DNA of 32,000 nucleotides from Zygophlyctis sp. KS116 (taxonomy: Eukaryota; Fungi; Chytridiomycota). Under the pieces are notes generated by a model, which saw only the letters and a program-made list of their open reading frames with translations, searched no databases and was not told the origin of the DNA. Shown one piece after another: positions 7,730-14,959 of the stretch. Where the stretch lies: assembly GCA_054661495.1 (NCBI GenBank), contig BAAFSQ010000054.1, positions 18,221 through 50,220 of the forward strand. Reading direction: 5' to 3'. Every line of letters starts with the position of its first letter. The first letter of the stretch is position 1. Both the position numbers and the translations under genes were made by a program.

Positions 7730-8905
7730 ATGCGAATGTTTCGACGATGGCAAAGTTCAACTGTTTTCAAATTGGCAGAAAATAGCTTCGACGTCCACAA
7801 ATGTGACATGCCGCCTCTAGAGACTACTCTAAGTAGAACCCAGGCGCTTGATCTATACAAGACAATGGTTAATATTCGTAGGATTGAAACGGCATCGGAT
7901 CAGGTAATTTATTTGACTCATCGATAGCTCTACAAAGCAAAGCTGATTCGAGGCTTTTGTCATTTATCAACCGGACAAGAAGCGGTGGCTGCAGGGATGG
8001 ATGCTGCAATTACAAAGGAAGATTCAATAATTACTGCTTATAGATGTCATGGATTTACTTATACAAGAGGGGTCTCTGCAAAGGCTATTATTGCGGAATT
8101 GATGGGAAGAGTTGATGGATGTTCCAAGGGAAAAGGGTAATTACAGGTTTCATTAGTTTATCTCGCCGTAAATTTACTTTTTAGAGGTTCGATGCATATG
8201 TTTGGAAAAGAATTTTATGGTGGAAATGGGATTGTTGGGGCACAGGTTCCTATTGGGGCGGGTATTGCATTTTCTCACAAGTATTTGGGAAAAAAGGCAA
8301 TGTGCTTTTCAATGTATGGTGATGGTGCGTCAAATCAAGGTCAGGTTTTTGAAGCTTTTAATATGGCAAAACTTTGGGATCTTCCAGTCGTTTTTGTTTG
8401 TGAAAATAATAAGTATGGAATGGGAACTTCTGATAAGCGTCATTCTGCATCTACAAATTACTATACTCGAGGAGATTTTCTTCCAGGAATAAGAGTTAAT
8501 GGAATGGATGTTCTTGCAGTTAAAGTTGGTTGTGAATTTGCAAGAGAATGGACACTTTCTGGAAAGGGGCCAATGGTCATGGAACTTGTGACGTATCGTT
8601 ATGGTGGTCATTCAATGTCTGATCCAGGAACTACTTATCGAACTAGGGAAGAAATTCAACATATGAGATCTACCCGTGATCCTATCACAGGATTTAAAGA
8701 AAAAATTATTGCTTCTGAACTTGTGACTGATGCTGAATTAAAGAAACTAGACAAGGATATTAAGGCAGAGATTGATCAAGCAGTGGAAGAGGCTACAGCA
8801 TCTCCAGAGCCAGGTTTAGATCAGCTATTTACTGATATCTATGTCAAGGGAACTGAGCCTCCATTTTTAAAGGGAGTAATGTCAGATGATATTCATACTT
8901 TTTAA
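7730..8905 (+). CDS. PDA1: Pyruvate dehydrogenase E1 alpha subunit, mitochondrial, 367 aa
   Basis: Exons 7730-7903, 7928-8136, 8185-8905 (introns 24 and 48 nt). Motifs [30 protein letters not shown], and phospho-loop [20 protein letters not shown]. Confidence 0.98.
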
Positions 8906-12476: not shown

Positions 12477-12564
12477 TTTACAATTTAGAGCACTATTTCT
12501 CATACAATGGAATTTTGAGTTGGAATGACGCAGGTTGTGTGGCGCTCTAGCCTTGATCAAATGA

Positions 12565-13063
12565 TTATATTGGCTTCATTAATTGTAAAAGTAATAAAAA
12601 CACAGCTGCATATAAAATAACTGTCCCTGATGCACTTACAATCAGCAGTATTTTAGCGGTTCTTTCATTAATACTTATAATCCGTACCTCGCATATCCTA
12701 TGGCCGCCCGTTGTTTACCTCTAATAATCAGCGCATCCACTTGTGCTGCATTGTATATTGCAAGTAAAGCTATCGGAAACGTAATCTAGTCTTAAAAACA
12801 ATAATTACAAGACAAAAAACACTTAGAAAGCTCACAATTATACTTTCTCCTAGATATGAATATATACTGTCAGAGTCAGTAGGAGATTCTGGTTCTGATG
12901 ATCTATTATTAGAAAATAGTTCAGTAATTTGTGTAGCTATACGGTGTACAGCTCCTCCGTTTGAGTGTCCGCCGATTGATGATGTACGGCGACGATATGA
13001 TACAGGAGAAGCTGATACATTCCCTTGAGTAGACTCATCATTTAATAGAGGGGTGGTCTCCAT
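12565..13063 (-). CDS. CD225/dispanin (IFITM/PRRT/TMEM233-like) membrane protein, 149 aa
   Basis: Exons 13063-12809, 12785-12688, 12661-12565 (introns 23 and 26 nt). The spliced C-terminal half SYLGESIIVSFLSVFCLITFPIALLAIYNAAQVDALIIRGKQRAAIGYARTAKILLIVSASGTVILYAAVFLLLLQLMKPI follows the CD225 pattern (YL..SI....FC..P+.++A+..S..V......G....A..YS..AK.L + TM). Recognised by eye; no HMM run. Confidence 0.75.
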
Positions 13064-13987: not shown

Positions 13988-14959
13988 TTATGTCTGCTGG
14001 AAATATAATGATGGCTGAATAGGAAATTCTGCAATTTTATCTAAAACAGTTGCAATACGTAATCCAGACTATTCATGATTCAAACAAAATCATACCTGTG
14101 CCAACAATTTTTCCGCGATCCCGATACTGGAATTATAATATCCTTTAAATTAGAAAAAAATTCAAAACTCACCCATTCCCAATTCTCTTCTTCGCTTATA
14201 ACCAACCCAAACATAATCACAATTTACCTGATTACTTTGTACAATCCATTCTTGCGGACAACTCTGTACTTTATCTGGATCATTATCAAGTTTTTGACAA
14301 GTTTTCCATTTAACAGATTCATCTTTCCATTCATTCAAGAGTTTATCAACCAAGTACTTTGCATATTCTCTTAAATCGCCATGAAAATCATTCTTGATTC
14401 TTGTCGTAAAAAGAGCCCAATCCCAGACAGAATGCATATTAATATACTTACCCATATATTTTGCCATTGCTCTATTTCCCTATTTTGTTTTAAAAGATAA
14501 CTAGTACTCCTTTATCACGTCCACAAGCATGCAAAGGCTGATGAATATCACCAATAAAATGCACCAGAAACTTTAGAGACTCATCTCTAAAATTATTAGA
14601 GCGCAGTAATCTTGATGTATAATTCTGAATTGCACTCACAACACATCCATCTGTACAATCAGTAGAAACTTGTGCTAAACATCGCCGTGGAGGAGCATCA
14701 TGAGTATCCATGTAATGCAAAGATCTTGCCCAGTCGTAAGAATGATTCGACTTGATTTCATCACCCCTTATCAAAATTATAAAAAGTCAATTTACCATGT
14801 TGCAACTTTAGATAGATTTGCCGATACCAGTAAATTGACATATTTGGTAGTTTTAGTGCTTATAAGCATATCAGCGATTAAACCGCTCACTGTATGACCA
14901 AGACTTCCAAATGCGGTAACGATATCCAATGATAATATGACCAAAAGACCTGCCAACAT
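13988..14959 (-). CDS. Secreted S1/P1 nuclease, 285 aa
   Basis: Introns 14795-14767, 14507-14480, 14172-14143, 14095-14069 (29, 28, 30, 27 nt). Signal peptide MLAGLLVILSLDIVTA, then FGSLGH, ATWGDEIK, LHYMD, LKFLVHFIGDIHQPLH, DKGGN, MHSVWD, LLAQSGLRIA. Confidence 0.92.

Follow-up and report, generated by a model that had tools for sequence, protein, structure and literature searches.

A probable CD225/dispanin membrane protein encoded by a three-exon gene with tiny introns in a freshwater chytrid

Introduction

Does a zoosporic fungus encode a member of the CD225/dispanin family, a group of membrane proteins that includes the human antiviral IFITM proteins and whose eukaryotic representatives have been reported only in metazoa, the choanoflagellate Monosiga and the brown alga Ectocarpus (PMC3282796)? 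In the published model, the family came into eukaryotes by a bacterial transfer into the choanoflagellate-metazoan ancestor (PMC3282796; cited in 2024 by PMC11730294). The question is raised by a 32,000-nucleotide stretch of DNA (the window), whose initial annotation proposed that an uninformative open reading frame conceals a spliced, dispanin-like gene, and held that the family is not regarded as fungal. The latter view agrees with the published survey of dispanins (PMC3282796), and none of the papers covered by our literature search connects chytrids or any other early fungus with CD225, dispanin or IFITM. We suspect that InterPro lists some fungal CD225 members.

Results

The host is an uncultured freshwater chytrid

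The genome that contains the window amounts to 12.7 Mb in 1,175 contigs, with ≈34% G+C, and is present in many freshwater metagenomes. We find that, for the exon of PDH E1-alpha at 8192-8902, the best matches that carry a name all come from Chytridiomycota, at 69-75% identity, with Thoreauomyces, Gaertneriomyces, Spizellomyces, Entophlyctis, Gorgonomyces and Kappamyces among them, and that the window sequence is nested within the chytrid clade of a PDH E1-alpha tree (FastTree), beside uncultured metagenome sequences. These matches and the tree bear out the proposed zoosporic fungal host, which is an uncultured freshwater chytrid (Chytridiomycota).

The gene is split by introns of 23 and 26 nt

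The coordinates of the three-exon model proposed in the initial annotation are all correct. The gene lies on the minus strand, where exon 1 (13063-12809; 85 codons) begins with the ATG at 13063 and encodes a polar tail of ≈68 residues followed by the first half of hydrophobic segment 1. Intron 1 (12808-12786; 23 nt, GTAATT...CTAG) interrupts this segment, the second half of which, including its Pro, is encoded by exon 2 (12785-12688; 32 codons and 2 nt) together with a basic loop. Intron 2 (12687-12662; 26 nt, GTACGG...AAAG) is in phase 2 and splits the Arg codon of Y-A-R|T-A-K, such that exon 3 (12661-12565; 1 nt, 31 codons and TAA) supplies the loop end (T-A-K) and then the C-terminal transmembrane helix. 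Both introns are of the GT-AG type, and the spliced gene holds 85 + 32 + 1 + 31 = 149 codons. Read without splicing, the open reading frame at 12770-13063 runs into intron 1 and gives 97 residues. An alternative acceptor that would shorten intron 1 to 18 nt is rejected, as the reading then meets a stop. Searches of the genome with the exons, at exon-level sensitivity, find a single copy.

Comparison with three metagenome contigs that are ≈98% identical to the window at the nucleotide level (L001, L002 and L011) provides evidence for this splicing pattern. Relative to the window, the only gene-wide indels are a 1-nt insertion in intron 1 in L001 and L002 and a 1-nt deletion in intron 2 in all three contigs, with a further 2-nt deletion in the 3' spacer of L011. 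Intron 1 is thus 24 nt long in L001 and L002, where it also carries one substitution, and intron 2 is 25 nt long in all three; in coding sequence, insertions and deletions of this size would be frameshifts. Between exon 1 of the window and that of L001 there are five synonymous and three non-synonymous differences, which all lie inside the first 18 residues, and residues 19-149 show zero amino-acid change. Exons 2 and 3 are identical to the window in L001 and L002; relative to L011, exon 2 shows one synonymous change and one Ile-to-Val replacement, and exon 3 a single synonymous change in its last codon. Variation distributed in this way is typical of a spliced gene that evolves under purifying selection, and the splice model is more than a chance reading. 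Two metatranscriptome runs have words in common with the region; their reads touch the neighbouring Cu-ATPase gene only and no splice joints are seen.

That Cu-ATPase gene, which matches the Pfam families HMA, E1-E2_ATPase and Hydrolase, is itself interrupted by three GT-AG introns, of 30, 26 and 25 nt (11012-10983, 10532-10507 and 10253-10229, minus strand), and taking them out restores the canonical motifs T-M|D-V-L-I-T-L-G and C-P-C-A-L-G|L-A-T-P-T. Tiny introns are therefore normal in this chytrid genome. The genes in this run stand close together, with 12 nt between the TAA (13078-13076) of an upstream gene for a TPR protein and the ATG at 13063, in the same frame, and 61 nt (12504-12564) from the TAA of the CD225-like gene to the Cu-ATPase ATG at 12503. 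With such spacing, promoter and 3'-end signals must overlap the neighbouring genes, or transcripts must be shared. Among the relatives by PDH or Cu-ATPase that we checked for synteny, the only usable locus is L011, from a near-identical strain, as the more distant contigs stop short of the place where the gene would lie or have no DNA on record. One chytrid that is less closely related (PDH 73% identical; a 21,143-bp contig in ENA) has the TPR gene followed by a same-strand 105-residue open reading frame, which runs off the contig end at the spot expected for a CD225 orthologue.

The exons match consecutive parts of the CD225 profile

Exon 2 alone matches Pfam CD225 (PF04505) with an E-value of 0.021 and 15.4 bits over profile positions 18-46 of 68, and CD225 is the sole Pfam family reported for the exon peptides. 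The exons were scored singly, and the 15.4 bits of exon 2 lie below the PF04505 cut-off of 27.1 bits, as is to be expected of less than half a domain. Exons 1 and 3, again taken singly, fall below the HMMER filters for Pfam CD225. We also built an independent profile from nine Bacillota CD225 domains (loci L013-L021), which is a valid model of the family because it detects PRRT1 in PDB entry 9zks, at 9e-14. On this bacterial profile the end of exon 1 aligns with positions 3-19, exon 2 with 21-46 and exon 3 with 52-73, consecutively and in order, and hhalign places exon 2 on the bacterial alignment with an E-value of 0.0042. Five of the six columns that are invariant in bacteria are kept, without gaps.

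The scores of the single exons on the bacterial profile are low (3.6-6.9 bits), and shuffled peptides reach the observed score in 2 of 3000 trials for exon 1, 3 of 3000 for exon 2 and 170 of 3000 for exon 3. Scores of 7.0-9.5 bits are also reached on this profile by three non-coding frames in other parts of the window, so that single exon-sized matches of such strength are unreliable in the window. Two of these frames, at 14149-14497 on the plus strand, have the highest single-piece scores in the window for the N-terminal motif of the profile (9.5 and 7.3 bits); they are chance matches and lie antisense to an S1/P1-nuclease-like gene at ≈14165-14786 (minus strand). Because no single piece is exceptional, we chained all six-frame pieces against the bacterial profile in an unbiased way, with 40 Markov null windows as control. 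The three-exon model, with neither more nor fewer pieces, emerges as the top co-linear chain in the window and is alone exceptional, scoring 15.2 bits as compared with 10.9 bits for the best chain in the 40 null windows and 7.1 bits for the best null chain of at least three pieces. The CD225-like domain so defined spans all three exons (12595..12871, minus strand). The core sequence quoted in the initial annotation is read correctly from the window, and its CD225-like character is borne out by the exon 2 Pfam match, the co-linear chain and the invariant columns. The gene product is likely to be a member of the CD225/dispanin family.

Searches for other relatives return no homologue beyond those at ≈98% nucleotide identity, whether among proteins, representative sequences or metagenomes. 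The 97-residue open reading frame finds one 93%-identical fragment only among 5.8 billion proteins; exon 2 has no match among 1.84 billion representatives, nor in the PDB; a search of NCBIfam, metagenome scans with exon 1 and the exon 3 frame as queries and a protein atlas searched with single pieces likewise return no match. When the whole genome is searched in six frames, neither Pfam CD225 nor the bacterial alignment finds anything, although the gene is present, because the domain is split by tiny introns.

Protein anatomy and family hallmarks

The encoded protein has the dispanin layout, with a long N-terminus, two hydrophobic helices joined by a short Lys/Arg-rich loop, and a short C-terminus. 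The polar part, residues 1-68, has a mean hydropathy of -0.82 and contains clusters of Ser with basic and with acidic residues, and 48% of the exon 1 composition is S/T/P/G/N/Q. Hydrophobic segment 1 comprises ≈22 residues with a central Pro (hydropathy 1.7-2.2), the loop carries five Lys/Arg, and hydrophobic segment 2, encoded by exon 3, is a 24-residue helix with a mean hydropathy of 2.38, followed by a tail of 4-6 residues. Composition and hydropathy thus agree with the disordered N-terminus and the two hydrophobic segments, including a C-terminal transmembrane helix, that had been proposed.

The hallmarks of dispanins are an A-x(6)-A and a G-D motif in the loop, a Cys pair in helix 1, written C-C or C-F-C, and a Gly in helix 2 (PMC3282796). 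The first is present as A-I-G-Y-A-R-T-A and is complete only once intron 2 is removed, and the helix 2 Gly is found in exon 3 (S-A-S-G-T-V), its register off by one relative to PRRT1. In the G-D motif the Gly is kept and the Asp is replaced by Lys (R-G-K). The double Cys is absent, as exon 1 has only one Cys, towards its end (V-F-C-L), and Ala replaces the second Gly of GxxxG, both departures having been described accurately in the initial annotation. An R-SNARE-like subset of CD225 proteins carries a central Arg in its SNARE-like motif (IFITM3 R85, PRRT2 R295; PMC11730294), and at this position the chytrid protein has Asp (Q-V-D) where PRRT1 has Q-V-R.

The animal proteins PRRT1/SynDIG4, PRRT2 and TUSC5 share with the chytrid protein a polar N-tail, the Pro of segment 1, a basic loop that carries a conserved Gly and A-x6-A, and, at the C-terminus, a transmembrane helix with Gly. 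Exon 2 has 10 identities in 28 ungapped positions with a stretch of PRRT1 (A-I-x-x-A-x-Q-V, R-G, A, R-x-A). Relative to these three proteins, the chytrid protein differs in its one Cys in place of CC, a 2-3 residue insertion in helix 1, the replacement of G-D by G-K, and an Asp where PRRT2 has R295 and IFITM3 R85. PRRT1/SynDIG4 is contained as chain M in PDB entries 9zks, 9zkt and 9zku, an experimental template for CD225. A Y-A-x-T-A-K loop end is presumably common to the chytrid core and IFITM3; in comparison with IFITM1-3, the vertebrate DSPA group, the chytrid protein is without the YxxPhi endocytic motif and the palmitoylated CC, and has GxxxA instead of GxxxG.

The intron positions also set the gene apart from animal dispanins, as holozoan members share a splice site where the intracellular loop begins (PMC3282796); in PRRT2 this is c.879/880, and R295 follows two codons later (PMC11730294). 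When the sequences are aligned without gaps from the conserved Gly, this site falls inside chytrid exon 2 (A-A-Q|V-D). In the chytrid gene the introns are located in helix 1 and, at phase 2, 18 codons further on, positions not shared with Holozoa. Bacterial CD225 proteins (Bacillota L013-L021), a group to which the mycobacterial "IFITMs" also belong (PMC4488726), have in common with the chytrid protein the Y-L-x-E/x-S-I domain start and Q-V-D-x-L as well as the invariant columns described above. The chytrid gene differs from them in its two spliceosomal introns, its host-like base composition and its ≈68-residue, eukaryote-style, phospho-rich tail.

The N-terminal tail contains the sequence E2-T-T-P-L6-L7 (13043..13060, minus strand; codons 2-7), which does fit the [DE]xxxL[LI] sorting consensus, as claimed. 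This consensus occurs at a base rate of 0.00126 per residue in the long open reading frames of the window, corresponding to an ≈8% chance of a match in a 65-residue tail. E-T-T-P-L-L is kept in L001, L002 and L011, strains that are near-identical.

Discussion

These results lead us to conclude, with good confidence, that the locus is a genuine nuclear gene of a chytrid, with three exons and present in one copy, that its 149-residue product is a membrane protein of the CD225/dispanin family, and that this protein would, by analogy, act in trafficking or fusion. The gene very probably extends the family into early fungi, as judged from its sequence. A reading of the stretch as non-coding or as a decaying pseudogene, the splice model being an artefact of the choice of GT..AG pairs, might appeal to an AT-rich DNA that is rich in GT and AG and to the lack of reads on the gene in the two metatranscriptome runs; it is scarcely credible given that the indels fall in the predicted introns and not in the exons, that substitutions are biased to synonymous sites, and that residues 19-149 are fully conserved relative to L001 while introns and spacers vary. 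The closeness of the upstream stop and the ATG, 12 nt apart in one frame, might alternatively mean that the open reading frame provides extra exons of the TPR gene by way of a 33-nt in-frame intron (13090-13058), a GT..AG pair that does exist and would remove the TAA at 13078-13076. Its donor (GTTAAA) and acceptor (GGAG) are unlike those of the five verified or supported introns nearby, which start with GTA and end in (A/T/C)AG or GTAG; the stop codon and the ATG are kept in all relatives, and genes of this run commonly stand close together, as the 61 nt to the next gene show, all of which makes such a fusion highly improbable. A more serious alternative, which we nonetheless regard as improbable, is that the gene encodes a real, small hairpin membrane protein whose likeness to CD225 is due to chance or convergence. 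A basic loop between short hydrophobic helices is a common design, exon-level scores are weak and matched by non-coding frames (7-9.5 bits) or, in the case of exon 3, by 170 of 3000 shuffles, several CD225 hallmarks are absent, and single pieces go unmatched in the protein-atlas, representative-library and PDB searches. What speaks against such a resemblance is that the profile is covered almost from end to end, and in the right order, by three exons that lie next to each other, a result to which no null window comes close, that CD225 is the sole Pfam family reported, and that A-x6-A and all but one of the six invariant columns are retained in an ungapped match.

A further alternative accepts the family membership, which is itself likely, and goes on to make the protein an IFITM-like antiviral factor or an inhibitor of vacuolar fusion that is sorted to endolysosomes by ETTPLL. 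It can draw on the single [DE]xxxL[LI] match at residues 2-7, with its ≈8% probability of arising by chance, and on the fact that IFITM3 works from endosomes (PMC11730294). We consider it very unlikely, as the antiviral residues of IFITM3 (the palmitoylated Cys pair, F75/F78, R85 and G95) are mostly not conserved (PMC11730294, PMC3282796), the CC pair, the central Arg and the second Gly of GxxxG, which matter in IFITM3 and PRRT2, are absent, the IFITM subfamily is a vertebrate clade (PMC3282796), and the conservation of the motif is seen among near-identical strains only. An endolysosomal sorting signal, read from one short motif, is speculation, as is an antiviral or vacuolar fusion-regulator role. 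We know of no interferon system in fungi.

Returning to the reading that we prefer, a CD225/dispanin protein whose role is judged by analogy, the predicted chain would run from a polar, Ser/Thr-rich cytosolic N-terminal tail through a Pro-kinked hydrophobic segment and a basic loop with Gly and A-x6-A to a C-terminal transmembrane helix. By analogy with PRRT2, TUSC5, PRRT1 and IFITM3, the protein may be located in endomembranes or the plasma membrane, where it would modulate vesicle trafficking or membrane fusion. That it would do so as a SNARE mimic is doubtful because the central Arg is Asp.

The origin of the gene may lie either in vertical descent from the opisthokont ancestor or in a separate bacterial transfer. 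Vertical descent from a dispanin of the opisthokont ancestor, with a family that predates Holozoa, is a tentative possibility that we hold to be on the unlikely side; if true, the published transfer into the choanoflagellate-metazoan ancestor would be wrong, and zoosporic fungi would keep an animal-like regulator of fusion and trafficking that was lost in Dikarya. An intron-bearing, constrained chytrid member would make the family older (opisthokont) or acquired more than twice. The locus also serves as a warning that annotation based on ORFs or on six-frame HMM searches misses genes interrupted by introns of 23-26 nt. Chytrids are now transformable, and an orthologue in a cultured chytrid could offer a simple unicellular system for the bare CD225 domain.
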